Below are positions 8,106 to 39,869 of a stretch of 45,098 nt of DNA, piece after piece. Numbering within the stretch: position 1 is the first letter of the stretch; each line of letters begins with the position of its first letter. A program made the translations under genes and the position numbers. Location of the stretch: contig JAXLNO010004965.1 in the NCBI GenBank assembly GCA_038087875.1, forward strand, positions 1-45,098, in the 5' to 3' direction. Origin of the DNA: Malacoraja senta. Lineage: Eukaryota. The notes beneath the pieces are model-generated. The model did no database searches, had not been told where the DNA came from, and worked only from the letters and a program-made list of their open reading frames with translations.

Positions 8106-8624
8106 AAGCATATTGGCGTTCAAAGTAGGTTACTATTGTAATTATGGTACATGATGTTGCTGAGGACATATCAGGAGCACTGTGCACAGCTTGGTTCTCA
8201 AATTTAAGAAAGGATATATTAATATTGGATATCAGCTAGAAGAGATTTCTGGAATAAGCAAGTGTTGCCTAACCATGAATGGCTGAAATCACTGGTTCTG
8301 TGTCCCTTGGAGATGAGAAGAAACAGAGTTAACCTTATGAATGTATTAAAGAGGCATGATGTGGTGGTGAATTGATGGATAATGCGTGGATATATTCTAA
8401 AAGAATAGGGAATTGTGTCTTATGTGGAATAAGCACAGTAAAGTAGTTGAGGCAGTCATATCAGTTGTTATCAACATAAATTGCTAGATAGCTCTAATTT
8501 GTACAAATGCAGGGCAGTCTATTGAGAATTTCTGTCATGCTTGATAAACTTAATTTAACTCCTTCCATTTATTTCAGTTCCTGCATTTTAATCACATCCA
8601 TGAAATCTTCTACTCAGCGATTGG

Positions 8625-8665
8625 TTAGCAGTGCATGTTCTGCTTTGGTTGAATATTTTGATAAT
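8625..8665 (-). CDS. Candidate terminal cytoplasmic exon (D-YQNI-QPKQNMHC-stop)
   Basis: Branch-like TCTAAT and tract TTTAATTTCCCTCCTCAG|AT. The phase-1 frame gives (D)YQNIQPKQNMHC*. There is a minus-strand AATAAA at 8568-8573. Linkage to the TM exon across about 24.6 kb of mostly TE sequence is inferred. Confidence 0.55.
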
Positions 8666-8794
8666 CTGAGGAGGGAAATTAAATATTAGACAACAAAGAA
8701 ATGGCATAGCAGAAAACAGAACTCAGAAAGATGCAACTAGTTTATTCACTTTAACTGTTGATTCATCCCACATAACATCTTCCTTCCAGATATA

Positions 8795-8979
8795 AAGGCA
8801 CAGCGCCAGACACCTGGGTTTGATCCTGACCACGGGTGATGTCTGTATGGAATTTGTACCTTCTCCCTGTGACTGCATAGGTTTTCTCCAGATGCTCCAG
8901 TTTCCTCCCACATTCCAAAGACAGATGTGCAGGTTTGTAGGTTAATTGACCTGTGTCCCTAGCTTATGTGGGTGATCAT
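8795..8979 (+). mobile_element. tRNA-derived HE1/V-SINE-like element, 5' part (continues at 13489-13560)
   Basis: B-box-like GGGTTTGATCC and the conserved core GTTTCCTCCCACATTCCAAAGAC. The 3' part TGGTTGGTGCGGACTCAGTGGACCGAAG...CTAAACTAAAC resumes after the CR1. Confidence 0.8.
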
Positions 8980-9336
8980 AAGGTCCGAAAGCCGTTGGAG
9001 AGGTCGCTGAGGGAGGAGCTACAACCGAGCGGTAGGACTTAAAAAGGAGCGCGGGGGCTTGTTCCTTACAGAGGTCCGAAAGCCGTTGGAGAGGTCGCTG
9101 AGGGAGGAGCTACAACCGTAGGACTTAAAAAGGAGTACCCAAATCGGCAACGTTCCACTTCAAAAACAAGTGGGTTTGAGGAAGCCGCTGATTGGTGGAC
9201 GCAGATAAGAGAGAGCAGCTGATTGGGAGTCAGATCCCTGCTGATTGTACTGTATTGTAGCAGTTTGTTTTGTATTGTAGCAGTTTGTTTTGTATTCTAT
9301 CAGTTTGTTTTATATTCTATCCAGGGTAAGGGGAGT

Positions 9337-10272
9337 ATGACGGCCAGGGCAGTTTACTGTTCTGGATGTCAGATGTGGGAAGTAATGGAGTCTGTTAGCC
9401 CTCCAGACGTCCACATCTGCGCCAGGTGTATCGAGATGGGGCTCCTAATGGACCGTATTAGGAACCTGGAGCAGCAGCTCGATGACCTCCGTCTGGTCAG
9501 GGAGAGCGAGGAAGTCATTGAGAGGAGTTACAGGGATGTGGTCACTCCAACACCACAGGAGGCAGGCAAGTGGATCACGGTTGGGAGAGGCAAGGGGCAC
9601 AGGCAGGGACTAGAGAGTACCCCGGTGGCTGTACACCTTGACAATAAGTACTCCTGTTTGAGCACTGTTGGGGTGGACAGCCTACCTGGGGGTAGCGACA
9701 GCGGCCGGGCCTCCGGTATAGAGACTGGTCCTGTTGCTCAGAAGGGTAAGGAAAAGAAGAGGAGGGCAATATTAATAGGGGACTCTATAGTTAGGGGGTC
9801 AGACAGGCGATTCTGTGGACGCAGTCGGGAGACCCGGATGGTAGTTTGCCTCCCTGGTGCCAGGGTCTGTGATGTGTCCCAACGTGTCCAAGACATCCTG
9901 AAAGGGCAGGGAGAGGAGCCCGAGGTCGTGATACATATAGGTACCAATAACATAGGTAAAAAAAGAGAAGAGGTCCTGAAAGGAGAATTTAGGGAGTTAG
10001 GAGGGGAGTTAAAGAGAAGGACAGCAAAGGTAACAATCTCGGGATTACTGCCTGTACCACGCGACAGTGAGAGTAGGAATGGAGCGAGGTGGAGGATAAA
10101 TGCGTGGCTGAAGGACTGGTGCAGAAGGCAGGGATTCAAATTTCTGGATCATTGGGACTTCTTTTGTGGAAGGTTCGACCTGTACAAAAAGGATGGGTTG
10201 CACTTGAACCTGAGGGGGACCGATATCCTGGCGGGGAGATCTGCAAAGGCTACTGGGGAGACTTTAAACTAG
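9337..10272 (+). CDS. CR1 ORF1p: N-terminal Cys motif/coiled coil plus SGNH (GDSL) esterase domain
   Basis: MTARAVYCSGC...CARC, then a heptad region, then the esterase blocks LIGDSIVRG, CLPGA, HIGTNN and DGLHL. The first ATG is at 9337. Confidence 0.92.
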   Translation: MTARAVYCSGCQMWEVMESVSPPDVHICARCIEMGLLMDRIRNLEQQLDDLRLVRESEEVIERSYRDVVTPTPQEAGKWITVGRGKGHRQGLESTPVAVHLDNKYSCLSTVGVDSLPGGSDSGRASGIETGPVAQKGKEKKRRAILIGDSIVRGSDRRFCGRSRETRMVVCLPGARVCDVSQRVQDILKGQGEEPEVVIHIGTNNIGKKREEVLKGEFRELGGELKRRTAKVTISGLLPVPRDSESRNGARWRINAWLKDWCRRQGFKFLDHWDFFCGRFDLYKKDGLHLNLRGTDILAGRSAKATGETLN

Positions 10273-13200
10273 AATGGTTGGGGGGAGGGACTCAAATAGA
10301 GAATGCTATTAGACAGTGTGTGAGGCAGGAGGCAGAGAAGGAAAGCACTCAGACCCAACATGTAGGGGGGAAAGAAGAAAACAATAATAAACAGAGAATA
10401 AGAGGTGGTGGGGTTCTTAAATGGGTGAGCAGAGAAACAGAGGGGTGTAAAATGCGGGCGGAAGCAATAGGTAGCAAGGTGAAAGGTAAAAGTGGCAGGC
10501 AGACAAATCCAGGACAAAAATCAAAAAGAGCCACTTTTCAACATAATTGTATAAGGGGTAAGAGCGTTGTAAAAACAAGTCTGAAGGCTTTGTGTCTCAA
10601 TGCAAGGAGCATTCGTAATAAGGTGGATGAGTTGAACGTGCAGATAGCAATTAATGATTATGATATAGTTGGGATCACGGAGACATGGCTCCAAGGTGAC
10701 CAAGGCTGGGAGCTGAACATCCAGGGATATTCAATATTCAGGAGGGATAGAGAGAAAGGAAAAGGAGGTGGGGTGGCGTTGCTGGTTAGAGAGGAGATTA
10801 ACGCAGTGGAAAGGAAGGACATTAGCTTGGAGGATGTGGAATCGGTATGGGTAGAGCTGCGAAACACTAAGGGGCAGAAAACGCTGGTGGGCGTTGTGTA
10901 CAGGCCACCTAGCAGTAGTAGTGAAGTTGGGGATGGCATCAAACAGGAAATTAGAAATGCGTGCAACAAAGGCAAAACAGTTATAATGGGTGACTTCAAT
11001 CTACATATAGATTGGGTGAATCAAATTGGCAGGGGTGCTGAGGAAGAGGATTTCTTGGAATGTATGAGGGATAGTTATCTAAACCAACATGTAGAGGAAC
11101 CAACGAGAGAGCAGGCTATTCTAGACTGGGTATTGAGTAATGAGGAAGGGTTAGTTAGCAGACTTGTTGTGCGTGCCCCCTTGGGCAAGAGTGATCATAA
11201 TATGGTTGAGTTCTTCATTAGGATGGAGAGTGACATTGTTAATTCAGAAACAACGGTTCTGAACTTAAAGAAAGGTAACTTTGAGGGTATGAGACATGAA
11301 TTGGCCAAGATTGACTGGCAATTAGTTCTAAAAGGGTTGACGGTGGATATGCAATGGAAGGCATTTAAAGACTGCATGGATGAACTACAAAAATTGTTCA
11401 TCCCAGTTTGGCAAAAGAATAAATCAAGGAAGGTAGTGCATCCGTGGATAACAAGGGAAATCAGGGATAGTATCAAAGCAAAAGATGATGCGTACAAATT
11501 AGCCAGAAAAAGCAGCATACCAGAGGACTGGGAGAAATTCAGAGACCAGCAGAGGAGGACAAAGGGCTTAATTAGGAAAGGGAAAATAGATTATGAAAGG
11601 AAACTGGCAGGGAACATAAAAACTGACTGCAAAAGTTTTTATAGATATGTGAAGAGAAAGAGATTAGTTAAATCAAATGTAGGTCCCTTGCAGTCAGAAA
11701 CAGGTGAATTGATCATGGGGAACAAGGATATGGCAGACCAATTGAATAACTACTTTGGTTCCGTCTTCACTAAGGAAGACATAAATAATCTGCCGGAAAT
11801 AGCAGGGGGCCGCGGGTCAAAGGAGATGGAGGAACTGAGTGAAATCCAGGTTAGTCGGGAAGTGGTGTTGGGTAAATTGAATGGATTAAAGGCCGATAAA
11901 TCACCAGGGCCAGATAGGCTGCATCCCAGAGTACTTAAGGAAGTAGCTCCAGAAATAGTGGATGCATTAGTGATAATTTTTCAAAACTCTTTAGATTCTG
12001 GAGTAGTTCCTGAGGATTGGAGGGTAGCAAACGTAACCCCACTTTTTAAGAAGGGAGGGAGAGAGAAAACGGGGAATTACAGACCAGTTAGTCTAACATC
12101 GGTAGTGGGGAAACTGCTAGAGTCAGTTATTAAAGATGGGATAGCAGCACATTTGGAAAGTGGTGAAATCATTGGACAAAGTCAGCATGGATTTACGAAA
12201 GGTAAATCGTGTCTGACGAATCTTATAGAATTTTTCGAGGATGTAACTAGTAGAGTGGATAGGGGAGAACCAGTGGATGTGTTGTATCTGGACTTTCAGA
12301 AGGCTTTCGACAAGGTACCACATAAGAGATTAGGATACAAACTTAAATCACACGGTATTGGGGGTTCAGTATTGATGTGGATAGAGAACTGGCTGGCAAA
12401 CAGGAAGCAAAGAGTAGGAGTAAACGGGTCCTTTTCACAATGGCAGGCAGTGACTAGTGGGGTACCACAAGGCTCAGTGCTGGGACCCCAGCTATTTACA
12501 ATTTATATTAATGATCTGGACGAGGGAATTGAAAGCAACATCTCCAAGTTTGCGGATGACACTAAGCTGGGGGGCAGTGTTAGCTGTGAGGAGGATGCTA
12601 GGAGACTGCAAGGTGACTTGGATAGGCTGGGTGAGTGGGCAAATGTTTGGCAGATGCAGTATAATGTGGATAAATGTGAGGTTATCCACTTTGGTAGCAA
12701 AAACGGGAAGGCAGACTATTATCTAAATGGTGGCCGATTAGGAAATGGGGAGATGCAGCGAGACCTGGGTGTCATGGTACACCAGTCATTGAAAGTAGGC
12801 ATGCAGGTGCAGCAGGCAGTGAAGAAAGCGAATGGTATGTTGGCCTTCATAGCAAGAGGATTTGAGTATAGGAGCAGTGAGGTTCTACTGCAGTTGTACA
12901 GGGTCTTGGTGAGACCACACCTGGAGTATTGCGTACAGTTTTGGTCTCCAAATCTGAGGAAGGACATTATAGCCATAGAGGGAGTGCAGAGAAGGTTCAC
13001 CAGACTGATTCCTGGGATGTCAGGACTTTCATATGAAGAAAGACTGGATAGACTTGGCTTATACTCGCTAGAATTTAGGAGATTGAGAGGGGATCTTATA
13101 GAAACGTACAAGATTCTTATGGGGTTGGACAGGCTAGATGCAGGAAGATTATTCCCGATGTTGGGGAAGTCCAGGACAAGGGGTCACAGCTTAAGGATAA

Positions 13201-13388
13201 GGGGAAAATCCTTTAAGACCGAGATGAGGAAAAACGTTTTCACACAGAGAGTGGTGAATCTCTGGAACTCTCTGCCACAGAGGGTAGTTGAGGCCAGTTC
13301 ATTGGCTATATTTAAGAGGGAATTAGATGTGGCCCTTGTGGCTAAAGGGATCAGGGGGTATGGAGAGAAGGCAGGTACGGGATACTGA
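10089..13388 (+). CDS. CR1 ORF2p: APE endonuclease + reverse transcriptase
   Basis: Open for 1099 codons. EN motifs CLNARS, GITETW, GDFN and SDH; RT motifs [18 protein letters not shown] and KFADD. The first ATG is at 10452. Confidence 0.95.
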   Translation: MEDKCVAEGLVQKAGIQISGSLGLLLWKVRPVQKGWVALEPEGDRYPGGEICKGYWGDFKLEWLGGGTQIENAIRQCVRQEAEKESTQTQHVGGKEENNNKQRIRGGGVLKWVSRETEGCKMRAEAIGSKVKGKSGRQTNPGQKSKRATFQHNCIRGKSVVKTSLKALCLNARSIRNKVDELNVQIAINDYDIVGITETWLQGDQGWELNIQGYSIFRRDREKGKGGGVALLVREEINAVERKDISLEDVESVWVELRNTKGQKTLVGVVYRPPSSSSEVGDGIKQEIRNACNKGKTVIMGDFNLHIDWVNQIGRGAEEEDFLECMRDSYLNQHVEEPTREQAILDWVLSNEEGLVSRLVVRAPLGKSDHNMVEFFIRMESDIVNSETTVLNLKKGNFEGMRHELAKIDWQLVLKGLTVDMQWKAFKDCMDELQKLFIPVWQKNKSRKVVHPWITREIRDSIKAKDDAYKLARKSSIPEDWEKFRDQQRRTKGLIRKGKIDYERKLAGNIKTDCKSFYRYVKRKRLVKSNVGPLQSETGELIMGNKDMADQLNNYFGSVFTKEDINNLPEIAGGRGSKEMEELSEIQVSREVVLGKLNGLKADKSPGPDRLHPRVLKEVAPEIVDALVIIFQNSLDSGVVPEDWRVANVTPLFKKGGREKTGNYRPVSLTSVVGKLLESVIKDGIAAHLESGEIIGQSQHGFTKGKSCLTNLIEFFEDVTSRVDRGEPVDVLYLDFQKAFDKVPHKRLGYKLKSHGIGGSVLMWIENWLANRKQRVGVNGSFSQWQAVTSGVPQGSVLGPQLFTIYINDLDEGIESNISKFADDTKLGGSVSCEEDARRLQGDLDRLGEWANVWQMQYNVDKCEVIHFGSKNGKADYYLNGGRLGNGEMQRDLGVMVHQSLKVGMQVQQAVKKANGMLAFIARGFEYRSSEVLLQLYRVLVRPHLEYCVQFWSPNLRKDIIAIEGVQRRFTRLIPGMSGLSYEERLDRLGLYSLEFRRLRGDLIETYKILMGLDRLDAGRLFPMLGKSRTRGHSLRIRGKSFKTEMRKNVFTQRVVNLWNSLPQRVVEASSLAIFKRELDVALVAKGIRGYGEKAGTGY

Positions 13389-14428
13389 GTTGGATGATCA
13401 GCCATGATCGTATTGAATGGCGGTGCAGGCTCGAAGGGCCGAATGGCCTACTCCTGCACCTAATTTCTATGTATCTATGTATCTATGTATCATTGGTTGG
13501 TGCGGACTCAGTGGACCGAAGTGTCTGTTTCAATGCTCTCTCTCTAAACTAAACAAAAACTCAATACTCCTTCAAATAGTTTCGTTCACACATTTTCTAT
13601 GTTTTCTAACTTTCGCCTCCACACTAGGGTCAAATTACAGAGACCAATTAACCCATAAAACCTGGCATCTTTAGTATGTGTGTGAAAACTGGAGGACAGT
13701 GGAAACCCATGCGGTCATAGGGAATACATGCAAACTTCACACAGCCGACAACCGAGGTTAGGATTGAACTGATGTGTATGACGCACTGAGGCAGCAACTC
13801 TATCAGCAGCGCCACTCTGCCTCAGGTTGCGTCATGTTCAGCACAAACGTTGTTGGACAAAGGACCTGTTCTTCTATTACAGGGGCATTCCCATTCACCG
13901 TAAAATTCAGCGAACTCAGCACCATTGGGTCACTGGAAATATTCCCTGCCTGACCATCAGATCCCTCCAGATCAGTCGGACAGACACCAGTTAGGCAGAA
14001 TCTGCCTGCAAATGATTCATGTCCCTCAAACCCCTGCATCTCCATGCACCCACGAAGGTGCACCCCAGACGCCACCATCCCTGGCAGTGCTTTCCAGGCA
14101 CACACCACATAGTATGTAATAAAAACTTGCCCTTTTTAAAAAACTGCAGCTTCTACCCTGCACTGAATATAATGCAATAATTTAAATGCCATAGTAGGCA
14201 TTTAGTTAATTGGGATAATTTTAGTCAATTGGGAGGTGTGATTGCAAATCTTGTACAATATCATAAACCAAGTAAAATGTGACAGAGTGGCGCTATGGAG
14301 GCTTGAGTCCAGCGCCAACTAGCTCCGTGCCGAAGAAACTAAAAACGGGAGAAAATCGGGTCTTACCTGCAGCGATCACGATTTGAACGGCTGCCTGCGT
14401 GACGTCATCAGGCGCGCTACTTTACGGT

Positions 14429-15460
14429 ATGTCGTTACAACGTACCCCCACCCGTGTGACACAAAAAAAAGCCGTTAAAGGGAAACTGCAGACGGAAGAG
14501 GAAGGCCCTACAGAGGCCTCGGCCTCAGTTACAACGACGGCCCAGGAAGACCCTCGGAAGAAAATAAAACAGAAAAAGTCTGAAATGGAGGATCTTAAAA
14601 CTTTTCTCGTTGCCGAATTGAAAACCTTTGGAGAGAATTTTAAAGAGGAACTTTACTCTTTTAAGGTAGATTTTAAAGCAGAAATGCTTTCTACCGTTCA
14701 ACAAATACTGGAAATCTGGAAAAGGACGAGGGAGGAAGAAGTCAAGGATCAGATGGAAGCGCTGGAAGCCAGGCTCGTTTCGGTGGAAGCGAACGTTAAT
14801 ATGGATGTGGCCCCCATTCATCACGAACTTGATCAACATAGAACAGCGATAACCGAACTTGAGAAATGGGCGGCGACAAGTGCGGAAACTGTAAGTCGAC
14901 TCCTTACTGAAAACCAACGCCTCTCCGATATGGTGATCAAATTAAGTGATAAATGTACCGATTTGGAGGGACGTCAAAGACGTAAGAACCTAAGAATTGT
15001 AGGGGTGAAAGAAGGAAGTGAGAGGGAAATGGGCTCTCGGGACTTTGTGGCAGACCTATTACAAAAAGCCTTCAAATTGGATCACAAACCTTCACTCGGT
15101 CGAGCTCATAGAGCGCAGCGGCGTCGTACACAAGATGATGCCCATCCAAGACAAATTATCGTAAAGGTGCAACTGGATCATGAATTTGACGATATAATGA
15201 AGAAAATTGTTCGAGGCGGACAGCTCCTTTTTGAAGGTGTGAGATTCAGTATTTACCGAGATTATCCGGCAGAAGTCTTCAAGAAAAGAGCGCTGTTCAC
15301 TGAGACAAAAAGAATACTGAAGAATGTACCTGGTTTGAGATACGGCCTGCTTTATCCCGCAAGACTAAGAGTCACCTACAAGTCCAAGGAGCAATTTTTT
15401 ACAGACCACGAAAAAGCACTGGAATATGCCAAAGAAATCGGTAACATGACCGTAGACTGA
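14429..15460 (+). CDS. L1 ORF1p (coiled coil + RRM + CTD), open frame
   Basis: DLEGRQRRKNLRIVGVKEG, RAHR, IYRDYP and YGLLYPARLRVT are L1 ORF1 motifs. ATG at 14429. Confidence 0.9.
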   Translation: MSLQRTPTRVTQKKAVKGKLQTEEEGPTEASASVTTTAQEDPRKKIKQKKSEMEDLKTFLVAELKTFGENFKEELYSFKVDFKAEMLSTVQQILEIWKRTREEEVKDQMEALEARLVSVEANVNMDVAPIHHELDQHRTAITELEKWAATSAETVSRLLTENQRLSDMVIKLSDKCTDLEGRQRRKNLRIVGVKEGSEREMGSRDFVADLLQKAFKLDHKPSLGRAHRAQRRRTQDDAHPRQIIVKVQLDHEFDDIMKKIVRGGQLLFEGVRFSIYRDYPAEVFKKRALFTETKRILKNVPGLRYGLLYPARLRVTYKSKEQFFTDHEKALEYAKEIGNMTVD

Positions 15461-16468
15461 AGAATTTACATTACTCCTTAGGAGTCAAGGACTAACAGGA
15501 CCGCCAGATCTAAAAGGACCTTTAAAGGTCTTTTAAGAGCTTTAAGGACATTCGAAAACCGAAAAAGACAGAGGACATTGGAGAAAACCGTGATCTTTGT
15601 AATTTTTTTTTAAAACTTTTTTTTTTTTACTAATCATTATTATTATCTGTATATTCATATCTAACTATATATGTAACAACTAATACTTATTAAATATCCA
15701 TATTACCACTAAAATTATTAACATTAACATTTCTCATAAAAATTTAATACTGTATATGATTGATAACAATGATTAATAATTAATAGTCTTCGATTAACGT
15801 AGAAATGAATTACATACTTATATTATATAGGAGGATATGCAAGAGGTAAATTAGCCTACGTCATAATAAAGCTTGACGGTTTTTCTCTTTATTTTTCAAT
15901 TTCAAATTAAATTTATAGATTTAGCGAAGAAATTAATATGATATGTAGAGAATAATAACGTTGTGAATTTTTGCTGTTCTTGAACTTTTCTACAGGGATA
16001 CGTGCTTATGTATGTATGCACATGGGTATATATACATATATATATATGTATGTATATTGTGTGTGTGTATGTATGGGTATGTATATAAGTTTGTTATCCC
16101 AAAGAAGTTATTTGAATGTTAGAAATAATCTTTCTTTTTCTTCGGGCACGGAGCTGGGAATTTTTTTTTTCTTACAAAGGCTACGGAAGTCTTTAGAATT
16201 CTAGCCACGTTAGTGTGGCTATCACTAACTACACTAATTGTAGATGTAGTTCTTTTTCTTTCACCCTTTACTAATCAATTCTATCACTTTTTTCACTTTA
16301 AATATTTTTATAACTTAATGTTTGAATGGAAAAACAAGACTAATACAAGGAGATGTGTTCGGAAGAGCGATGTAGATGATTTTAAATTCATCTATCTGAA
16401 GTTCGGGAGCAGGGTCAGGTTTTATGTGTTGTACCTTCTGCTCGGTTATAGACCACTTTAGAAACAAT

Positions 16469-19400
16469 ATGCAAGATGTTAATATGACAAGAGGGGGTCA
16501 GGGAATAACATTTTGTAGTTGGAATGTCAAGGGAATCAATGAACCAATTAAGAGAGGTAAAGTTTTGGCACATCTAAATTTAATCAAAACAGATATAATA
16601 TTTCTCCAAGAAACACACCTTAAAAAGGAATCTCAACATAGACTTAAAGCTAAGTGGATCGCTGAATCATATCATTCCTCTTTTTCCCATAAGTCCAGAG
16701 GAGTTGCAATATTAATTCGTAAAGGAATACCTTTTACGAACTCTTCAACAATAGTGGATATTGATGGTAGATATATTATATTAGTTGGAGAGTTAAATGG
16801 AGAAAAAGTGATTCTTCTTAATGTATGTGGGCCTAACTTTGATAACCCCATGTTTTTTAATAAAACATTTAATAAAATTCCTGAATTTACACAATATAAA
16901 TTAATAATTGGAGGAGACTTCAATTGTACATTAGATTCATACTTAGATAGATCATCAAGGCAAAAAAAAGTAAAATCTCAATCAAGTGTATTTCTAAATT
17001 CATTTATTAATACCACTAATATTAAGGATGTCTGGAGAATAGAAAACCCAACTGGACGGGAATATTCATTTTACTCACCAGTATATAAAACATACTCAAG
17101 AATAGATTATTTTTTAGTTGACTCTACGTTTATCCCATTTATTTATAATTCAAAATACCATAACATTATAATCTCAGATCACGCACCTGTAACATTCATG
17201 ATAAAATTAAATGGAATGTCTGAGAAACAAGCATATTGGAGATTTAACCCACAAATTTTGAACGAAAGATCATGCCAGGAATATATTATTAAACAGATTC
17301 AAATATTTTTTGAGGTAAATGACAACCCTGACACACCTACTTCTCTTATGTGGGAAACGTTTAAAGCGTTTGTTCGAGGTACATTAATTTCTGCTCAAGC
17401 ATTTTATAATAAAGAGAACAGGATTAAGCAACAAACATTGGAAAGTGAAATCAAGCAACTAGATATAGAAAATGCGAGAATGCCATCTATTTTAAAACAT
17501 TATAAAATTGCTGTATTGAAATATAAATTAAATAAAATGTATTCAGAACAAGTAATAAAACTTTATCAAAAAACCAAACAATTACATTTTGAATTTGGAG
17601 ACAAACCACAAAAACTATTAGCACGTTAGTTACGAAAAATGGAAGGGGAAAAAATAATTCATAAAATTAGAACAGAGACAGGAGAATTATTAAAAATGCC
17701 CAAGGACATAAATGATAGATTTCTCCAATACTATCATAACCTTTATTCAACAAAAACCGTAGGACAATCAGAAGGAATAGCAGATTTTTTACTAAAATGT
17801 AATTTAAAAGGTTTAGATTCAAACGATAGAGAATTATTAGAAAAGGAGATTACGATAAAAGATATTGAGGAGTCTATTGGCTCTTTAAAAAATGTTAAAG
17901 CAGTAGGACCAGATGGTTTAGGCTCCGAATTTTATAAAAAAAATTATGATTTGCTTTGCCCACGTTTACAAAGACTGTATGAGTATATCTATACTCAACA
18001 GAAACTTCCAGACACTTTAAATGAATCTATAATAACACTTATTCCTAAAGCTGATAAAGATCCGGAAGACCCGGGATCATATAGAGCAATTGCACTTTTA
18101 AATACAGATCAGAAAATATTAACTAAAATACTAGCGCATAGATTAAGTACAGTGATGAATAAATTAATACACCCTGACCAAACAGGCTTTATTCAGAAAC
18201 GGTACTCATATTATAATCTAAGAAGATTATTTAATATTATATATTCCAAGAGAATTATTAATGAAGATCTAGCAATAATCTCACTTGACGCTGAAAAAGC
18301 ATTTGATCAGGTCGAATGGTCTTATTTATTTTCGGTGATGGAAAATATGCAGCTAGGGGAGAAATTCTGTACATGGATAAAACTGTTATATACAAATCCC
18401 ATGGCTAGAATATTTACAAACCAAAGGTTGTCATCTAAATTTAGCCTATCTAGAGGTTGTAGACAAGGATGCCCGTTATCTCCATTATTATTTGCGCTTG
18501 CTATTGAGCCACTTGCAGAAAGAGTCAGGGGGCATCCGGAAATACACGGGTGTAACACAAAGGACACAGTGAATAAAATTTCTCTATACGCAGATGATGT
18601 ATTAATTTACATTACAAAACCAGAAATTAGTATTCCAAACTTATTAAAGCTAATAACCCAATTTGGTTCACTTTCAGGATACAGAATAAATTGGAATAAA
18701 AGTGAAATTATGCCAATAAGGGAACGTAACAAACAGATAATACAACAATTTCCATTTAAAATAGTAAAGGTAAAATTTAAATATCTAGGTATTTATGTAA
18801 CTAAGATATATACATCATTATTTAAAGCAAATTTTCCACCATTACTGAATAAACTACATAAGAATATTCAATACTGGAAAACACTTCCTATCTCAATGGT
18901 TGGCAAGATTAATGCCATAAAAATGATTTTTTTACCGCAAATATTATACTTTTTTCAGACAATTCCGATATATCTGGCAAAAGACTTTTTTAAAAAACTG
19001 GACTCTATTGTTAATGATTTTATCTGGGATTATAAGAATCATAGGATAAACAAAAGACATTTGTGTAAATCAAAAATAAATGGAGGCTTGGTTTTACCCA
19101 ACTTTTTGTTTTATTTCTGGGCAGTTAATATTAAAAATATGAATTTCTGCTTGGAAGAAATAGATCATCAACCAGACTGGTTAAAAATGGAAAAGGAAGA
19201 TTGTTTACCTTTTGATATCGGTTCGATATTATTTGCTACGTCTAAATTAAACAAAAAAACTTATAGGGAAAACCCTATAATATTTAGTGCTATACGAATT
19301 TGGAAAAAATTAAAACAGATTAAAATTAGATAATTTATCACTTTTTCTTCCAATTGTGAATAACCCTTTGTTTAAGCCTTCATGGTTGGACGGGGGTTTT

Positions 19401-19978
19401 ACACAATGGAAGAATTATGGAATTAAAAATATGGGACAACTTTACAAGGAAGGCACTTTTCTGACATTTCAGGAGTTGCAACAGACTTATGGACTTCGAG
19501 GAAATGATTATTTCAGATATCTTCAACTTAGAGATAAAATCTTTCAACATATCTCACCTATATGTGATAAATGTCAACATTTAGAAGCTACCTTATCTCA
19601 TATGTTTGCAAACTGTATAAAATTAAAAAATTCTGGGTAAATATTTTCAGTATAATATCTAAAATAACCAGCACACAATTGGACCCAGATCCAAAATTAA
19701 TAATACTTGGAATATTAGAATTAAATCAAACATTTAGAACAACACAAAGAAACTTTATTGATTATAGTTTAATAACAGGAAAAGAATTAATTCTAAAATT
19801 TTGGAAAGGCCCTACGATCCCCACAATCAAAATGTGGATTATAGAAATGACGGAGACCTTAAACGAGGAAAGAATCAGATTCTCCCTGTTGGACAAACAG
19901 GAATTATTCGTTGGAACATGGTCTCCTTTTATTGATTACTTAAAGGGTCAGAACAGTTCAGCACAGGAACCTGACTAG
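16469..19978 (+). pseudogene. L1 ORF2 (EN-RT-Cys domain), disrupted
   Basis: SWNVKG, LQETH, GGDFN, SRIDY and SDHAP; DAEKAFD, QGCPLSP and YADD; CDKC...HMFANC. Stops at 17627-17629 and 19331-19333, an apparent deletion near 19530, and a frameshift. Confidence 0.92.
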
Positions 19979-20088
19979 CACTCGGGCTAAAGAATGGATG
20001 AAATGCTATACTTAGAAATGTACGAATATATCTCGAATGAAGTTTTTTATTTTAATAAATTTTTCCATTCTTCTTTAATTATCTCTTT

Positions 20089-20125
<37 letters not shown>

Positions 20126-20458
20126 CTTCTTTTCTTTCTTTACTTCATCTATCTCTTTAGTTCTATTTAGTTTATAAAAAAAAAGGCAAAAGGTATTGGA
20201 GACAATGTAATAATAATTGACAATATTATCAATTTAAAAATGTAAGACTGTAATGATGTAAATAGGTTGTGTACTTATCTCCAATAAAAAATATTTTCAA
20301 AAAAAAAAAAATGTGACAGTCAAAATGGCCAGGCACAAAGAACAGAATAATCATGAACATCAATAACATGTCAATAACTAGACTCTCCTAGCAGCAGCAT
20401 GCTGTAAGGTTGCAAACTCGTTTGCTCCCTTAACTTTTAACTTCCACTGACCACTCTT

Positions 20459-26661: not shown

Positions 26662-28027
26662 CGGTTCACTGCTTCCTCTCCCAGTTTGACCCGGTCACCC
26701 CTACTGAAATCTCCAAACTCATCAGCTCTTCCAAACCCACTGCCTGCTCCCTTGACCCTCTCCCCACTCCCCTGCTCAAGTCCTGCCTCCCTGCTCTCTG
26801 CCCCTACCTCACTAATCTTTTCAACTCCTCATTGTCCCAAGGAATTGTCCCCTCTGCTTTCAAAACTGCTGCTATCACACCAATCTTAAAGAAACCTGGT
26901 CTTGATCCCTCCTCCCTCATTAACTACCGCCCTATCTCAAACCTCCCCTATCTTTCAAAAACCCTGGAGCGTATCGTCGCGTCACAACTTCATTCCCACC
27001 TCCTCGCGTATAACCTATTCGAACCACTCCAATCTGGCTTTCGCCCCCTCCATAGCACAGAAACTGCTCCCCTGAAAGTCCTCAATGATCTCCTTACCTC
27101 TGCTGACACTGGCTCCCTCAATATCCTCATCCTCGACCTGAGTGCAGCCTTCGATACCGTCAACCATAACATCCTGTAACAAAACAGAATTTCTCCTCAT
27201 TGGCTCCAAATCAACACTCACTAAAATTAACAACCCCACTCTCATTATTGACGGCACCATTGTCTCCCCATCTCCTCAGGCCCACAACCTTGGCGTGATC
27301 TTTGACTCAACCCTCTCCCTTGAGCCTCACATCCGCCATGTTGTCAAAACATCATTTTTTCACCTCCGCAACATTGCCAAAAGCAGATCCTCTCTCACAC
27401 CCCCCGCTGCTGAAAGACTCATCCATGCCTTCATCTCCTCCCGACTGGACTACTGTAACTCACTTCTCTTTGGAATCAATTCCAGCAGCATCAACCGACT
27501 CCAACTGGTCCAGAATGCAGCCGCTCGACTCATTACCCACACCAAATCCTGGCACCACATCATCCCAGTTCTCAAAGAACTTCACTGGCTTCCCATTTCC
27601 CACCGGATCATCTACAAAATCCTGGTCCTCACCTACAAAGCCCTCAACAACTTGCCCCCCCCCCTTATCTCACTGACCTCCTCTCCCCCTACCAACCCTC
27701 ACGGTCCCTCAGATCCACATCAGCTGGTCTCCTCTCCACTCCGAAATCAAACCTCTGCACTTTTGGAAGCAGAGCCTTCTCCAGGGCAGCTCCCAGGCTC
27801 TGGAATTCCCTCCCACAACTGGTCCGAAATTCTGAGTCCCTCACCATCTTCCAGTCCCGCCTCAAGACCCATCTCTTCATCTCTGCATACCCTTAGTCCC
27901 ATGTTCCCCTCCCCTTTGCATCTCTGTCTTACTGCTCTATTTTGTTTTGTTTATTCCTGACTCTCAATGTAAAGCGACTTTGAGTCCTGAAAAGCGCTAT
28001 ATAAATAAAATCTATTATTATTATTAT
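26662..28027 (+). mobile_element. 5'-truncated L2 LINE with internal RT deletion, nested in L1
   Basis: TAAAT TSD at 26657-26661 and 28028-28032. NYRPISNLP...DLSAAFDTVNHNIL jumps directly to NKTEFLLIG at about 27178. (TTA)n tail. The host L1 reads HQFTK | WSPKS. Confidence 0.9.
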
Positions 28028-29884
28028 TAAATGGTCACCAAAGTCCTTATTCTTAATTGGCCGAATCAATGCTATTAAAATTTTCATTTTACCTAAATTT
28101 CTGTATTTATTTCAGACGATACCAATTTTTATTTACAAATCTTTCTTTGATATTATAGACTCTAACATTTCTTCATATACATGGCAGAATAAAAATCCCA
28201 GACTAGGTAAAAAATACCTACAGAAATCAAAAAAAGTTGGTGGTTTGGCATTGCCGAACCTTAGACTCTACTATTGGGCAGTCAATGTTCGTTATTTAAC
28301 ATTATGGACAAAAGATTTAGAAGATACCTAATGCCCTGGATGGATAAACCTAGAACGTAATTCCTTACAAGGGCTACAATTGGCTTCTATTCTAGGGACC
28401 TCGTTACCTTTTACAATTATGAGATTGAATAAATATATGACTAACCCAATAATAAGACATACGTTCCGAATACGGTTTCAATTTCGTAAGATTTTTGGAC
28501 TATCTGATTTTATCCAAATTTCTCTTCCAACCATCTAGTACTGATCAAGTTTTTTTGTTATGGAAGAGGAAGGGATTAGTAGCTTTTCGTGATTTGATTT
28601 TGGAGGGTTGTTTTATGTCTTTCGAACTCTCCAATAAATGTAACTTACCTAATTCACATTTTTTTTTGATATTTACAAGTTAGACAATAGGAACTATCCC
28701 TTTTCCCGCTACCACATCAATCCGAAATTTGGGATTTTTTTTTACAGTTGAACCCTTATCAGAAAGGATTAATAACGACTATTCTTGAGTTGATTTTAAA
28801 ATTACAAATAGATACATTTGATAAAAATTAAGAATGACTGGGAATGAGAACTCAAAATTTCTTTATAGAGAAATGGGAGAGGGTCCTTCAATTAGTTAAT
28901 ACCTCTTCAATGTGTGCAAGACACGCTTTGATACAATTTGAGGTGGTCCACAGAGCTCATATGTCAAAAGATAAGTTAGCTCGTTTTTCTGGTCATATAA
29001 ATCCTACCTGTGACAGATGTAACTCTGAAGTGGCATCACTGACCCATATGTTTTGGTCCTGCCCTCTTTTGGAAATATATTGGAAAGAAATTGTTGATAC
29101 TATTTCGGTAGTCTTAGGTATAGATTTACAACCTCATCCTATTACTGCAATTTTTGGGTTACCAATGTTAGATTCTATTCATTTGTCCCACTCCGCCCAT
29201 CGGTTGATTGCTTTTACCACATAAATTGCCAGAAGATTTATTGTCTTTAAATGGAAAGATTCCAACCCTCCGACCACACTCCAGTGGTATTCTGAAACGA
29301 TATCATGTTTAAATTTAGAAAAAATCAGGTGACATTGTTGAACCCTTGGTTAAATTTGATAAGACTTGGGGAAAATTTATTGAACACTTTCATACAACAT
29401 AAATTGATCCCTCTTTAACCGTTATAAAAATTATTTTACCTTCATAGGGTGGAACGGACTTGACGACAAACAGACTTAAATTGTTGAATTTCTCAGTTCA
29501 GATTCGGTTTTGCTCTGTTTTGTTTTATTTATTTATTTTATTTTTATACTTATTTTATTATTATCAATTTTTTTTAAAAAAATTTAGTTTAGGGGGGTTT
29601 TGTTTTTTCTTTTTCTTTTTGTCTTTTTATCTTTCCTTTTTTTTACATTTATGTTTCTTTTTAAAGATTTAACTATATTTACATAGAGACCGAGAGGTCT
29701 ATATTCATTGTGTATTTTGACACTGGTCTCATATTAGTTTATACCTGTTATTAATGTGTTTAATCCTGATCCCTATGTATCAATACCATTGTTATGTTTA
29801 TCATTATTATTTTTGCTCTGTTTTTGTGTTTTATGTTTGTTTTTGTTTTTTGGAAAAAAAACAATAAAAAGATTTTAAAAGAAA

Positions 29885-32660: not shown

Positions 32661-32734
32661 AAACTAGTAAACGTTAAACTGCAACCAATCTGCCTCATAG
32701 CTGACTTGGATTGTGAGCAGTGGAAGCCCCCAAC

Positions 32735-33040: not shown

Positions 33041-33285
33041 ACTCATTGATATTTCTAGGATTTGGGGCAGTGAATCCATAATGTATAACATTTTTTTACA
33101 CTGAATTCACAATTTTTAAATATCTGATTATCAGAAACATTTAACAACAGCACAAAGGCTAGTTGACAGTGGTGACTGTCGAGGCATTTCAGGTGTAGCT
33201 GCTGCCTTATCCTACTTGAGATCGATCATTTCTTCAAGCCCAATACCTTTACTAGCAACAGTGCATCACAATTTTTCCATCTTAC

Positions 33286-33393
33286 CTCTCCTCTTTTTTC
33301 TCCACCAAACAATTACTGCCAAGACAATAGCCAGCAATATCAGCACACACACGGCAATAAGGCCTATGTGCCTGTCTTTCTGCCTATTTCCTT
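33286..33393 (-). CDS. Connecting peptide + transmembrane exon of the MHC class I-like gene
   Basis: Acceptor TTCTTATTTTTCAG|AA and donor AGAG|GTAAGA. The exon is 108 nt, phase 1-1, and encodes (E)GNRQKDRHIGLIAVCVLILLAIVLAVIVWWRKKRR(G/D): a hydrophobic helix followed by a basic stop-transfer cluster. It is on the same strand and in the same phase as the C1 exon. Confidence 0.85.
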
Positions 33394-34398
33394 CTGAAAA
33401 ATAAGAATGCATAATTTTACAAATCAATTGTTAAGCTGTGCAGTTAAATAGATGGGCACTGTCTGAAGACTTCAGAGTGAAGAAGGGTCTCGACCCGAAA
33501 TGCAACCTATTCCTTTTCTCAAGAGATGTTACCTGACCGCTGAGTTACTCCAGCATTTTGTGTCTATCTTTGGCGCTTTTCAAGGTATATAAGATGATAT
33601 GGTGTTTTGAATCACGGAGTTCTGCAGCATGGCAAAGGGACAATATATGTTCTGTACAACTCTATGATCTATGGCACCATCACAGCCACAACTTAATTCA
33701 AGAAAGAAGGTGAATTGAAAGCAGAAAGCTTTAACCCTATATAAACTAACATTTGTTTTGGGGAAAATGCTGGATTCCTTTCAATAATGGCAGAACATTT
33801 AAGTAATAACAAAACAATAAAGTGCATTATCAGAGTATTAACAGGAAAATTGTAGAAAGAAAGAGATGCAGATACTGATTTACACAAAAGCTTTAGTTTA
33901 GTTTATTGTCACATGTATTGAGGTACAGTGAAAAGCTTTTGTTACGTGCTAACCAGTCAGTGGAAAGAATATACATAATAGACACAAAATGCTGGAGTAA
34001 CTCAGCGGAACAGGCAGCATCTCTGGCGAACATGGATTCATCACCTATTCCTTTTCTCCAGAGATGCTGCCTGACCAGCTGAGTTATTCCAGCAATTTGT
34101 GTCCATCTTCGGTGTAAACCAGCATTTGCAGTTTCTTCTTACACATGGACAGGTGACGTTTCGTTTTGGGACCCTTCTTCAAACTTTGTTTGAGAAATTG
34201 ATTAGAATTCTTTGAAAATGCAACAGGAACCCGTAGACAATGTATATTCGAGCAGCAGGTGTGCACAGTCTAAAATTCAAAAACAAAATGATGGAAAAGC
34301 AGAATAGGTAACAAAATTGGAATGAGAAACGAAAGAAATACAATATATTGCAGAGATCCAAACGTCGTGAACAAATCAATGTTTTTTTAAAGAAATAC

Positions 34399-35142: not shown

Positions 35143-38100
35143 ATACATAGATACATAGATACATAGAAAATAGGTGCAGGAGTAGGCCATTCGGCCCTTC
35201 GATCCTGCACCGCCATTCAATACGATCATGGCTGATCATCCAACTCAGTATCCCGTACCTGCCTTCTCTCCATACCCCCTGATCCCTTTAGCCACAAGGG
35301 CCACATCTAATTCCCTCTTAAATATAGCCAATGAACTGGCCTCAACTACCCTCTGTGGCAGAGAGTTCCAGAGATTCACCACTCTCTGTGTGAAAAAGTT
35401 TTTCCTCATCTCGGTCTTAAAGGATTTCCCCCTTATCCTTAAGCTGTGACCCCTTGTCCTGGACTTCCCCAACATCGGGAACAATCTTCCTGCATCTAGC
35501 CTGTCCAACCCCATAAGAATGTTGTACGTTTCTATAAGATCCCCTCTCAATCTCCTAAATTCTAGCGAGTATAAGCCAAGTCTATCCAATCTTTCTTCAT
35601 ATGAAAGTCCTGACATCCCAGGAATCAGTCTGGTGAACCTTCTCTGCACTCCCTCTATGGCTATAATGTCCTTCCTCAGATTTGGAGACCAAAACTGTAC
35701 GCAATACTCCAGGTGTGGTCTCACCAAGACCCTGTACAACTGCAGTAGAACCTCCCTGCTCCTATACTCAAATCCTCTTGCTATGAAGGCCAACATACCA
35801 TTCGCTTTCTTCACTGCCTGCTGCACCTGCATGCGTACTTTCAATGACTGGTGTACCATGACACCCAGGTCTCGCTGCATCTCCCCATTTCCTAATCGGC
35901 CACCATTTAGATAATAGTCTGCCTTCCCGTTTTTGCTACCAAAGTGGATAACCTCACATTTATCCACATTATACTGCATCTGCCAAACATTTGCCCACTC
36001 ACCCAGCCTATCCAAGTCACCTTGCAGTCTCCTAGCATCCTCCTCACAGCTAACACTGCCCCCAGCTTAGTGTCATCCGCAAACTTGGATATGTTGCTTT
36101 CAATTCCCTCGTCCAGATCATTAATATAAATTGTAAATAGCTGGGGTCCCAGCACTGAGCCTTGCGGTACCCCACTAGTCACTGCCTGCCATTGTGAAAA
36201 GGACCCGTTTACTCCTACTCTTTGCTTCCTGTTTGCCAGCCAGTTCTCTATCCACATCAATACTGAACCCCCAATACCGTGTGATTTAAGTTTGTATCCT
36301 AATCTCTTATGTGGTACCTTGTCGAAAGCCTTCTGAAAGTCCAGATACAACACATCCACTGGTTCTCCCCTATCCACTCTACTAGTTACATCCTCGAAAA
36401 ATTCTATAAGATTCGTCAGACACGATTTACCTTTCGTAAATCCATGCTGACTTTGTCCAATGATTTAACCACTTTCCAAATGTGCTGCTATCCCATCTTT
36501 AATAACTGACTCTAGCAGTTTCCCCACTACCGATGTTAGACTAACTGGTCTGTAATTCCCCGTTTTCTCTCTCCCTCCCTTCTTAAAAAGTGGGGTTACG
36601 TTTCCTACCCTCCAATCCTCAGGAACTACTCCAGAATCTAAAGAGTTTTGAAAAATTATCACTAATGCATCCACTATTTCTGGAGCTACTTCCTTAAGTA
36701 CTCTGGGATGCAGCCTATCTGGCCCTGGTGATTTATCGTCCTTTAATCCATTCAATTTACCCAACACCAATTCCCGACTAACCTGGATTTCACTCAGTTC
36801 CTCCATCTGCTTTGACCCGCGGCCCCCTGCTATTTCCGGCAGATTATTTATGTCTTCCTTAGTGAAGACGGAACCAAAGTAGTTATTCAATTGGTCTGCC
36901 ATATCCTTGTTCCCCATGATCAATTCACCTGTTTCTGACTGCAAGGGACCTACATTTGATTTAACTAATCTCTTTCTCTTCACATATCTATAAAAACTTT
37001 TGCAGTCAGTTTTTATGTTCCCTGCCAGTTTCCTTTCATAATCTATTTTCCCTTTCCTAATTAAGCCCTTTGTCCTCCTCTGCCGGTCTCTGAATTTCTC
37101 CCAGTCCTCTGGTATGCTGCTTTTTCTGGCTAATTTGTACGCATCATCTTTTGCTTTGATACTATCCCTGATTTCCCTTGTTATCCACGGATGCACTACC
37201 TTCCTTGATTTATTCTTTTGCCAAACTGGGATGAACAATTTTTGTAGTTCATCCATGCAGTCTTTAAATGCCTTCCATTGCATATCCACCGTCAACCCTT
37301 TTAGAACTAATTGCCAGTCAATCTTGGCCTATTCACGTCTCATACCCTCAAAGTTACCTTTCTTTAAGTTCAGAACCGTTGTTTCTGAATTAACAATGTC
37401 ACTCTCCATCCTAATGAAGAACTCAACCATATTATGATCACTCTTGCCCAAGGGGGCACGCACAACAAGTCTGCTAACTAACCCTTCCTCATTACTCAAT
37501 ACCCAGTCTAGAATAGCCTGCTCTCTCGTTGGTTCCTCTACATGTTGGTTTAGATAACTATCCCTCATACATTCCAAGAAATCCTCTTCCTCAGCACCCC
37601 TGCCAATTTGATTCACCCAATCTATATGTAGATTGAAGTCACCCATTATAACTGTTTTGCCTTTGTTGCACGCATTTCTAATTTCCTGTTTGATGCCATC
37701 CCCAACTTCACTACTACTGCTAGGTGGCCTGTACACAACACCCACCAGCGTTTTCTGCCCCTTAGTGTTTCGCAGCTCTACCCATACCGATTCCACATCC
37801 TCCAAGCTAATGTCCTTCCTTTCCACTGCGTTAATCTCCTCTCTAACCAGCAACGCTACCCCACCTCCTTTTCCTTTCTCTCTATCCCTCCTGAATATTG
37901 AATATCCCTGGATGTTCAGCTCCCAGCCTTGGTCACCTTGGAGCCATGTCTCCGTGATCCCAACTATATCATAATCATTAATTGCTATCTGCACGTTCAA
38001 CTCATCCACCTTATTACGAATGTTCCTTGCATTGAGACACAAAGCCTTCAGGCTTGTTTTTACAACGCTCTTACCCCTTATACAATTATGTTGAAAAGTG

Positions 38101-38673
38101 GCTCTTTTTGATTTTTGCCTTGGATTTGTCTGCCTGCCACTTTTACCTTTCACCTTGCTACCTATTGCTTCCGCCCGCATTTTACACCCCTCTGTTTCTC
38201 TGCTCACCCATCTAAGAACCCCACCACCTCTTATTCTCTGTTTATTATTGTTTTCTTCTTTCCCCCCTACATGTTGGGTCTGAGTGATTTCCTTCTCTGC
38301 CTCCTGCCTCACACACTGTCTAATAGCATTCCCTATTTGAGTCCCTCCCCCCAACCATTCTAGTTTAAAGTCTCCCCAGTAGCCTTTGCAGATCTCCCCG
38401 CCAGGATATCGGTCCCCCTCAGGTTCAAGTGCAACCCATCCTTTTTGTACAGGTCGAACCTTCCACAAAAGAAGTCCCAATGATCCAGAAATTTGAATCC
38501 CTGCCTTCTGCACCAGTCCTTCAGCCACGCATTTATCCTCCACCTCGTTCCATTCCTACTCTCACTGTCGCGTGGTACAGGCAGTAATCCCGAGATTGTT
38601 ACCTTTGCTGTCCTTCTCTTTAACTCCCCTCCTTAACTCCCTAAATTCTCCTTTCAGGACCTCTTCTCTTTTT
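35143..38673 (-). mobile_element. 5'-truncated copy of the young CR1 family
   Basis: Near-identical to about 9960-13488. ORF2 is broken by stops (about 37329 and 36465) and a 1-G deletion at about 36060. Same (TCTATGTA)n tail. Confidence 0.95.
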
Positions 38674-38699
38674 CTCTACAATAGATAGAGCAAAGAGGA

Positions 38700-39250
38700 G
38701 GATACAGAGTACAGAATATAGTTCTCAGCATTGTAACGCATCAGTTCCATAGACAATGTGCAATGAGGTTGAGGTGAATCGGGCATTGAACCTACATTAT
38801 GGAAGGACCCTTCCGAAGCCTGTTAACAGATGGAAAGGGGGTGTTCCTGAGTCTGGCAGTGTATACTTTCTACTTTCTGTACCTATTGCCTGATGGGAGC
38901 AGGAAGGAGGAATGACCGGGTGGGATAAGTCTCGTTTTCGAAGGCAACCTGGTGTAGACTGAATCAATAGTGGGAAGTCTGGGCTGTGTGATGATCTTTA
39001 ACTCTTTGTATATTCTTGCAGTCTTGGGCAGTGCAGTTCCCAAATCAAGATGTGATGCAACCCAACAACATGCTTTCTCTAGCAGCATCAATAGATGTTT
39101 GCTAGAGTCACCAGAGACATGATGAATATTCTCAGTCTCCGGAGGAAGTAGAGGTGTTAGTGTGCCTCCTTGGCTATGTGGCCAGTCCATGACCGAATAT
39201 TGGATAAATTCATGCCAAGGAACATGAAGCTCTCAATCATTTCCGCTTCG
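38700..39250 (-). mobile_element. Decayed Rex1-like LINE fragment
   Basis: Remnant translation LPTIDSVYT...PGHSSFLLPSGNRYR. Confidence 0.7.
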
Positions 39251-39603
39251 GACCATTGATTTGGATTGGGGCATGTACTCCCCCAGTGCCTTGCTGTTAA
39301 TCACATCATGAGGAAAGATTCATTTTTTATTTAAACATACCTTTTATGGATTTCATTTCCACTACTGAGAATCTCAAATACTCCTTCCTTGTATATTAGT
39401 TAGTTATTTACTTTTGATAAATTTTCTGTTGACAAAGTCTTCTGCTCATGTGGAGAGTGTGTGCTGATTACGTGATTGCTTAGAGCAACACCACTAAACA
39501 AAGAAAGTTTAAGCATCTTGGAATATGGGATGTAGTCACAATGATTAAAATGGAAACAACAGAAGATAATGATTATCTATGAAAGAATATTTAATGTTCT
39601 TAT

Positions 39604-39869
39604 CCCAGATGATGGTCTTCCCACCGGGCAGGCTGCTGTGATCGACATGACAGGAATACTGTTCCCATCATACGGATCATACTCAAGGACAAACTTTAGA
39701 TGATATGTTCCATCGTTGTTGGGTATGACCCCAGAAGATTTGGTCTCAGAGACATGTTGACCATTCTGCAACCAGCTGACATTGATGGCTGGTGGGTAAA
39801 ATCCAAACACAGTGCAGTACAGGACTGATTGGTCATCAGGGCGGGCAGCGAGAGATACCTCATGGGAAA
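39604..39869 (-). pseudogene. Ig C1-set exon, MHC class I alpha3-like, with a 1-bp frameshift and a mutated splice donor
   Basis: Acceptor CTTACTGTCTTGTAG|TT at 39870. The phase-1 frame reads xSHEVSLAARPDDQSVLYCTVFGFYPPAINVSWLQNGQHVSETKSSGVIPNNDGTYHLKFVLEYDPYDGN. After a 1-nt gap at about 39659 it continues YSCHVDHSSLPGGKTIIW-G. The two Cys are about 55 aa apart, and GFYP, W, PxxDGTY and YSCxVxHSSL are C1-set hallmarks. Exon length is 266 nt (267 expected). The donor reads G|ATAAGA instead of G|GTAAGA. Confidence 0.9.

Follow-up and report, generated by a model that had tools for sequence, protein, structure and literature searches.

Elasmobranchs possess CD1-like class Ib genes, which are named UFA/UGA in two papers (PMC10751288, PMC12562908); intact members of this lineage are described there as β2-microglobulin-type class I heavy chains that are said to bind lipids. 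That the groove of the lineage is hydrophobic and lipid-binding is a claim of the same two papers (PMC10751288, PMC12562908), and binding of CD1d-like lipids is reported in the latter (PMC12562908). Annotated homologues are known from more than 13 sharks and rays, and one structure of the lineage has been solved (PDB 9CH4). Intact members carry a conserved YxxI/V motif in their short tail, which, by our own reasoning, would resemble the signals that route CD1 via endosomes.

Two further class I-like systems are relevant for comparison. In mammalian CD1 molecules (e.g., CD1b and CD1d), the cytoplasmic tail is short and has a tyrosine motif of the YxxI type at its end, as is also found at the locus described here. 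MR1 is not listed for cartilaginous fish in reviews.

The window, i.e., the whole stretch of 45,098 nucleotides that was analysed, very probably holds the 3' part of a skate copy of the known shark and ray CD1-like UFA/UGA class I lineage that has been disabled recently. In a first-pass annotation, made from the letters alone, the gene had been called cryptic; this does not apply, as NCBI has annotated orthologues for many elasmobranchs, transcripts of these exist, and a crystal structure is available.

Exon map of the 3' half

Within the window, the gene is present with its final three exons on the minus strand, in the order α3, transmembrane (TM) and tail, and all of them are found where the first-pass annotation had placed them. 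The α3 (C1-set) exon (39604–39869, minus strand) follows an AG acceptor, is 266 bp long with a 1-bp deletion, and matches Pfam C1-set with E=1.8e-13 and its best PDB entry with E=2.3e-20. It is 92–93% identical to L. erinacea cDNA and keeps the tryptophan (VSW) and the cysteine pair (LYC, YSCHV), the second cysteine being situated behind the frameshift. The exon encoding the connecting peptide and the TM segment (33286–33393, minus strand) is an intact 108-bp unit with AG and GT sites, begins and ends in phase 1, and has 94% identity to cDNA; its splice contexts are identical to those of Amblyraja radiata, and its peptide reads (E)GNRQKDRHIGLIAVCVLILLAIVLAVIVWWRKKRR in the window and EGNRKKDRHIGLIAVCVLILLAIGLAVIVWWRKKRR in Amblyraja.

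The coding part of the terminal exon (8625–8665, minus strand), initially only a candidate, specifies (D)YQNIQPKQNMHC followed by a stop, including a YxxI sorting-type motif, and has an acceptor context identical to that of A. radiata. Annotated and transcribed skate class I-like proteins end in DYQNI(Q/P)PNQNVPC, and the end in the window is DYQNIQPKQNMHC; the counterparts of the tail peptide are DYQNIPPNQNVPC in A. radiata, DYQNIQPNQNVPC in L. erinacea and DYQTIQPNQNMRC in R. longicauda. The YxxI/V motif is kept in 14 of the 15 aligned homologues, as YQNI in the window and as YQNI, YQTI, YENI, YESI, YNAV, YNVI, YNTV or YNVV among the other aligned members.

The terminal exon is far longer than the first-pass annotation had it. 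According to the cDNA alignment, its 3' untranslated region (5116–8624, minus strand) reaches to about 5116: the L. erinacea transcript contig L003 aligns to the window at 8388–8667, 8107–8389, 6899–7369 and 5116–6255 with 79–89% identity, and window-specific insertions are present at about 6256–6898 and about 7370–8106. The value for annotation is modest and includes a fixed exon map for this part of the gene, with the long 3' untranslated region. The layout of one exon per domain, phase-1 junctions, and separate TM and cytoplasmic exons is present, with the same boundaries as in A. radiata. Joining of the C1-set exon to the TM exon, which had been proposed earlier as a test, is seen in full-length skate proteins and assembled transcripts, where all three exons are connected in order; the collinearity of the DNA along the entire window agrees with this.

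The exons for α1 and α2 had been presumed to lie past the right edge, and this fits the intron lengths of relatives. There, the α2–α3 intron spans 10–20 kb (A. radiata, 20.4 kb; L. erinacea, 9.7 kb), and no more than 5.2 kb of sequence is available for it in the window; across the whole window, tblastn with five full-length homologues gave no α1 or α2 match better than E=0.1. The window is also free of the GPR139-like neighbour gene that is fused into some L. erinacea models.

Lesions in the α3 exon and their interpretation

The window copy is unlike its UFA/UGA relatives in that α3 has lost 1 bp and has AT as its donor. At 39661–39662 (minus strand), one A of the Lys codon AAA is missing, shifting the frame after ...DPYDG; when the exon is aligned with three sequences from L. 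erinacea and that of A. radiata, the relatives have GGG-AAA-CAG and the window has GGGAACAG. At 39602–39603 (minus strand), the 5' splice donor of α3 is AT and not GT (GGG/ataaga in the window vs. GGG/gtaaga in both A. radiata and L. erinacea). All splice sites other than this donor are intact, as are the exons for TM and tail, which counts against a disabled copy. The earlier proposal that the exons are all in phase 1 and mutually in frame fails on the α3 exon, whose 266 bp, with the A missing, are not a multiple of three, and that of an intact 3' half fails on the two lesions; in the sequence as it stands, the reading frame that continues into TM meets a TAG after 9 codons. An open reading frame with usable splice sites, as expected of a functional gene, is thus lacking in the window copy, while the relatives are intact.

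Both lesions are read from the assembly alone and were compared across species, with runs of relatives only (best 31-mer share 0.30); neither occurs in the genomes of three skates, in two contigs of transcripts, or in the contigs of eight public runs from seven organisms. The base missing at 39661/39662 is present in contigs of runs X5, X2, X16, X1, X3, X4 and X8, and also of X20, and position 39603, which is T on the plus strand of the window, is C in the relatives in every run covering the site. Further bases particular to the window copy are located at 39692, 39790, 39829, 39832, 39855 and 39863. Loss of the A would scramble the final strand of the Ig fold and remove the second cysteine of this domain, and translation of the gene as written would end after nine codons of either the intron or the TM exon. 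The missing A and the AT donor together indicate a pseudogene or a null allele.

These lesions are probably recent, since the exons otherwise evolve like those of functional relatives. With R. longicauda as outgroup, exons on the window branch have changed by 1.9% and introns by 2.7% (ratio 0.70), and the exon/intron ratio on the branch of the functional A. radiata gene is 0.71. With this outgroup, the rates contain no signal of decay, which counts against a disabled copy. Long-term relaxed constraint was also considered, because an unrooted comparison suggested neutral evolution of α3; it was rejected when the signal vanished with R. longicauda as outgroup.

It is very unlikely, albeit compatible with the exon phases, that the locus is still expressed by skipping of α3, which would give an in-frame leader–α1–α2–TM–tail chain without the β2-microglobulin-binding Ig domain. 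Since α3, TM and tail share phase 1, splicing from α2 to TM preserves the frame; loss of the donor favours exon skipping, and isoform X4 of the L. erinacea gene at NCBI (P0169) joins α2 straight to the TM exon. That isoform, however, is a computed model fused to a neighbouring GPCR gene; the intact TM and tail exons, which would suit such a chain, are equally expected of a young pseudogene. Furthermore, no class I fold is known that reaches the surface stably without α3 and β2-microglobulin. If skipping did occur, loss of the donor might have produced a β2-microglobulin-independent, endosome-targeted CD1-like chain of the type α1–α2–TM–YQNI. More broadly, the lineage, although "single- or low-copy" in sharks, might form a multi-copy family with birth and death of genes in skates, with some copies being remodelled and not dead; to this whole scenario we accord little probability. 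A lineage that is multi-copy and turning over in skates would bear on the age and stability of CD1-like antigen presentation in jawed vertebrates. On its own, one more, and broken, copy of a class I-like lineage that is known to specialists and has been crystallised is of little weight.

Very unlikely, too, is a functional gene in which both lesions are errors of the assembly or consensus. The deletion falls in a short run of A residues, the TM exon, the tail exon and the remaining splice sites are perfect, the functional orthologue has the same ratio of exon to intron rates, and the reads compared are those of relatives only. Such a reading, however, needs two independent errors within 60 bp, one of them a substitution exactly at the G of the donor, and runs of three bases are not prone to error. 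Nor is there an excess of indels in the 1.6 kb around the site: only two window-specific 1-bp indels occur there versus dozens of substitutions, implying that the assembly is not rich in indel errors in this region. With its frameshift and its dead splice site, the window copy is most likely an ordinary pseudogene.

Relationship to class I, CD1 and MR1

Collinearity at 82–91% identity exists between the window and the loci of the gene in Amblyraja radiata, Leucoraja erinacea and Rhinoraja longicauda, and it extends 8 kb past the 3' end of the gene. The collinear orthologues contain Pfam MHC_I (74–87 bits) and C1-set domains, the nearest proteins are skate entries named "class I histocompatibility antigen, F10 alpha chain-like", and 9CH4, MR1 and CD1c are among the PDB neighbours of the α3 piece, all of which supports the first-pass view of a class I-type heavy chain from a nonclassical lineage of cartilaginous fish. 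The top PDB match for both pieces of α3 is 9ch4_A, to which the two halves align contiguously (residues 183–248 and 250–268), and α1/α2 of the skate orthologue match the same chain with E=5e-77. Judged by these matches, the window gene belongs to the CD1-like class Ib UFA/UGA lineage with PDB 9CH4 as its representative, the name being given at the level of UFA/UGA. Lineage members (9CH4 chain A; XP_032898133 from A. radiata; XP_055521885 from L. erinacea; the R. longicauda homologue) have the same exon order and phases, and over α3–TM–tail the window has about 87–89% protein identity to the skate members, with which it shares the W-W-R-K-K-R-R stop-transfer sequence and the DYQNI...C tail.

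A different home for the C1-set exon, i.e., an Ig or TCR constant, tapasin, B7-family, class II or W-category chain, is next to impossible and was refuted: constant domains of IgG, IgA and SIRP do appear in the PDB list (E 1e-11 to 1e-13), but class I-like chains come first, the exon has 85% identity to the α3 of skate proteins carrying Pfam MHC_I, its position is orthologous to that in the class I-like genes of three skates, its motif is PNNDGTY and not NGDW, and class II chains are absent from the 60 best PDB matches of the α3 piece.

The YQNI of the window is presumably also the motif of human CD1b, which we regard as a lead only, and CD1c is found among the PDB matches of α3. In contrast to CD1, the orthologues remain below the cut-off of the CD1-type Pfam MHC_I_3 (13.7–29.8 bits vs. 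35) and above that of MHC_I, and α1/α2 of the skate orthologue match class I of fish, shark and chicken, as well as MR1, ahead of any CD1. Bovine MR1 is the second-best PDB neighbour of the α3 piece (E 5.5e-19), and some ray homologues are named "MHC class I-related gene protein-like" by NCBI; however, the similarity to MR1 is confined to the general class I fold, with no evidence of orthology.

LINE insertions and size of the locus

LINE reverse-transcriptase (RT) and endonuclease (EN) reading frames are found in the introns, as expected from the first-pass description of these as transposon-filled. The spread of the three exons over 31 kb is due to lineage-specific LINE insertions into introns that were already long (8–14 kb in relatives). 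Within the α3–TM intron, a young LINE with an endonuclease reading frame (35143–38673, minus strand) is 99.1% identical to a copy at 9960–13490 and has no counterpart at the orthologous site of A. radiata, L. erinacea or R. longicauda. That second copy is part of a near full-length LINE in the TM–tail intron (9223–13490, plus strand), which encodes a GDSL-esterase ORF1 and an EN+RT ORF2 of 1099 aa (Pfam Lipase_GDSL_2, Exo_endo_phos and RVT_1) and is absent from the orthologous point in A. radiata. A third, 5'-truncated copy of the same LINE is located in the α2–α3 intron (40299–41376, minus strand; RVT_1 reading frame at 40562–41515); it is 98.8–98.9% identical to the other two and absent in A. 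radiata and L. erinacea.

Furthermore, the TM–tail intron contains a 15.6-kb block without an orthologous counterpart (14289–29882), where the collinear alignments with both A. radiata and R. longicauda skip from 14288 to 29883/29884. Further LINE fragments are located inside this block, with RT and EN reading frames at 16424–19333 and 23092–24603. The TM–tail intron, thus, measures 24.6 kb in the window versus 6.9 kb in A. radiata, and young LINEs have made the locus three times as large.

Exon structure, skate orthologues and lineage

The first-pass annotation described three minus-strand exons of an MHC class I-like gene as mutually in frame; all three are present in the window, with the frame broken in alpha3. 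The alpha3 exon (39869-39604, minus strand, 266 bp) is preceded by AG, and its first piece, translating as (V)SHEVSLAARPDDQSVLYCTVFGFYPPAINVSWLQNGQHVSETKSSGVIPNNDGTYHLKFVLEYDPYDG, is a C1-set domain (Pfam, E=1.8e-13) that matches class I-like chains of known structure (PDB search, best E=2.3e-20). The exon length is no multiple of three, and the conserved domain end, QYSCHVDHSSLPGGKTIIW, lies one base out of frame. On PDB 9ch4_A, the matches of the two pieces adjoin each other (residues 183-248 and 250-268); exactly one codon is damaged. The transmembrane (TM) exon (33393-33286, minus strand, 108 bp, with AG and GT sites) and the coding part of the tail exon (8665-8625, minus strand, (D)YQNIQPKQNMHC followed by a stop) are as described.

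A search of the complete set of 1.8 billion representative proteins, with the first piece of alpha3 as query, matched a 398-aa protein (85% identity), an isoform of the Leucoraja erinacea "class I histocompatibility antigen, F10 alpha chain-like". Its cluster includes Amblyraja radiata XP_032898133 and three transcript-derived 334-aa proteins, with the C-terminal part ...GGKTIIW-EGN(R/G)KKDRHIGLIAVCVLI(L/S)LAIGLAVIVWWRK(K/N)RR-DYQNI(P/Q)PNQNVPC. Upon alignment with the homologues, the alpha3, TM and tail peptides of the window follow the same order as in real transcripts. L. erinacea transcript contigs, in which the C1 and TM exons are joined, match the window precisely at the three exons and then along the 3' UTR to ~5116, giving a terminal exon of ~3.5 kb. 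The window is collinear, in reverse, with the gene loci of A. radiata (82-91% identity, including 8 kb past the 3' end of the gene), L. erinacea and Rhinoraja longicauda (~85%). Alpha1/alpha2 found no match anywhere in the 45,098-nt window; given the long alpha2-alpha3 intron of the relatives (20.4 kb in A. radiata, 9.7 kb in L. erinacea), their earlier placement past the right edge is reasonable. Based on intron distances, the window species is closer to Amblyraja and Leucoraja than to Rhinoraja, yet lies outside the Amblyraja-Leucoraja pair.

Skates, sawfish, manta, stingray and members of at least six shark orders have homologues of the A. radiata protein. In the tail, 14 of the 15 homologues aligned carry a Y-x-x-I/V motif, a putative CD1-type signal for endosomal sorting. 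The proteins score 74-87 bits with MHC_I and also contain C1-set, and their scores with the CD1-type model MHC_I_3 do not reach its cut-off (Pfam). Alpha1/alpha2 of the skate orthologue matches 9ch4_A, the solved structure of an elasmobranch CD1-like class Ib lineage, at E=5e-77, with fish, shark and chicken class I and MR1 far behind. Over the part of alpha3 that was aligned, 9ch4_A shares ~92% identity with the member from Stegostoma tigrinum, which suggests that its source is probably a carpet-shark relative such as nurse shark. The elasmobranch class Ib lineage UFA (with UGA) has been introduced as new, MHC-linked and single- or low-copy, and is called CD1-like with respect to its groove and biophysical properties, lipid binding being backed by crystal and mass-spectrometry evidence (PMC10751288; PMC12562908). 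Literature searches returned neither a primary UFA/UGA paper nor named reference sequences; hence, "UFA/UGA" is the most precise defensible name.

Two further features of alpha3 differ among skates. In the class I "GFYP" motif, Amblyraja and Leucoraja have Ala (VFAFYP; homologues P0154 and P0156) in place of the nearly invariant Gly, which is kept in the window (39802-39810), in Rhinoraja and in all sharks and rays aligned. The acceptor (39870-39872) reads tgtAG in the window versus tgcAG in A. radiata and L. erinacea, which is still legal, though weaker.

Probable disabling lesions in alpha3

Where relatives read GAT GGG AAA CAG TAT (D G K Q Y), the window reads GATGGGAACAGTAT in the exon alignment, with one A absent at 39661/39662. 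In addition, A. radiata and L. erinacea have the alpha3 donor GGG/gtaaga, for which the window has GGG/ataaga. The sequence as it stands no longer encodes the second Ig cysteine, and its translation would stop after nine codons of the intron or, with the usual junction, at a TAG after nine codons of the TM exon. The locus is most likely a copy, disabled recently, of a lineage that is already known, annotated and represented by a crystal structure; of the earlier interpretation, the class I-like family assignment holds, while integrity and novelty have to be given up.

Skipping of alpha3 would yield a predicted in-frame alpha1-alpha2-TM-tail chain, which the phase-1 exons permit; an L. erinacea isoform (X4, the NCBI model P0169, mapped on sequences L001/L002 and on window 33284-33394) is computed to join alpha2 straight to the TM exon, yet we consider this outcome improbable. 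The same model continues into the adjoining GPR139-like receptor gene, and read-through fusions of this kind account for several of the models at that locus.

Contigs of eight public sequencing runs from seven organisms were aligned to the alpha3 exon; all are relatives (best 31-mer share 0.30) and, therefore, the lesions in the window rest on the assembly. Every run covering the lesion sites inserts the missing base and has the intact donor base at 39603; in the RNA-type run X20, which likewise has the extra base, contigs end at both exon edges, as spliced transcripts would. An assembly error as the source of the lesions is quite unlikely, because one of them replaces the G of the donor, the deletion falls in a stretch of just three identical bases, and 1-bp indels specific to the window number only two in 1.6 kb, against dozens of substitutions. 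The skate class I protein matches and the collinear class I-like gene loci exclude a non-class-I origin for the C1 exon.

In runs X1 and X3 (one organism, each below 2 billion bases), summed contig depth over intron and exon (window 39300-40050) is in the thousands, against tens to hundreds in the other organisms, which could reflect enrichment, high copy number or a repeat.

Age of the damage

In an unrooted comparison, alpha3 appeared neutral (on the window side, 6.0% change in the exon and 6.3% in the flank), a signal that vanishes once R. longicauda is the outgroup. With that outgroup, the window branch carries 8 changes in 415 exon sites (1.9%), compared with 83 changes in 3040 sites of the intron (2.7%); the ratio, 0.70, is practically that of the functional A. 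radiata branch (0.71), and thus there is no sign of long decay. This points to either a recent disabling of the copy or weak constraint across the whole family.

LINE insertions and intron growth

From alpha3 start to stop codon, the gene measures ~31 kb in the window, 13.6 kb in A. radiata and ~8 kb in R. longicauda. The difference is due to three copies of a single young LINE, at 9960-13490 (plus strand), 35143-38673 and 40299-41376 (both minus strand), and a 15.6-kb block of other LINE fragments in the TM-tail intron (14289-29882) without counterpart in A. radiata or R. longicauda; none of these insertions is found at the orthologous points of A. radiata, L. erinacea and R. longicauda. The first copy belongs to a near-complete element starting at 9223, whose ORF1 encodes a GDSL esterase and whose uninterrupted ORF2, of 1099 aa, encodes endonuclease and reverse transcriptase (EN+RT). 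The copies are 98.8-99.1% identical to one another, which, together with the uninterrupted ORF2, suggests that this family is probably still active in the M. senta genome. The block comprises an EN+RT LINE fragment (16424-19333), a reverse transcriptase with an ALKBH8_N-like match (23092-24603) and a 1.3-kb piece (26667-27950) that corresponds, in the opposite orientation, to intron sequence of A. radiata.
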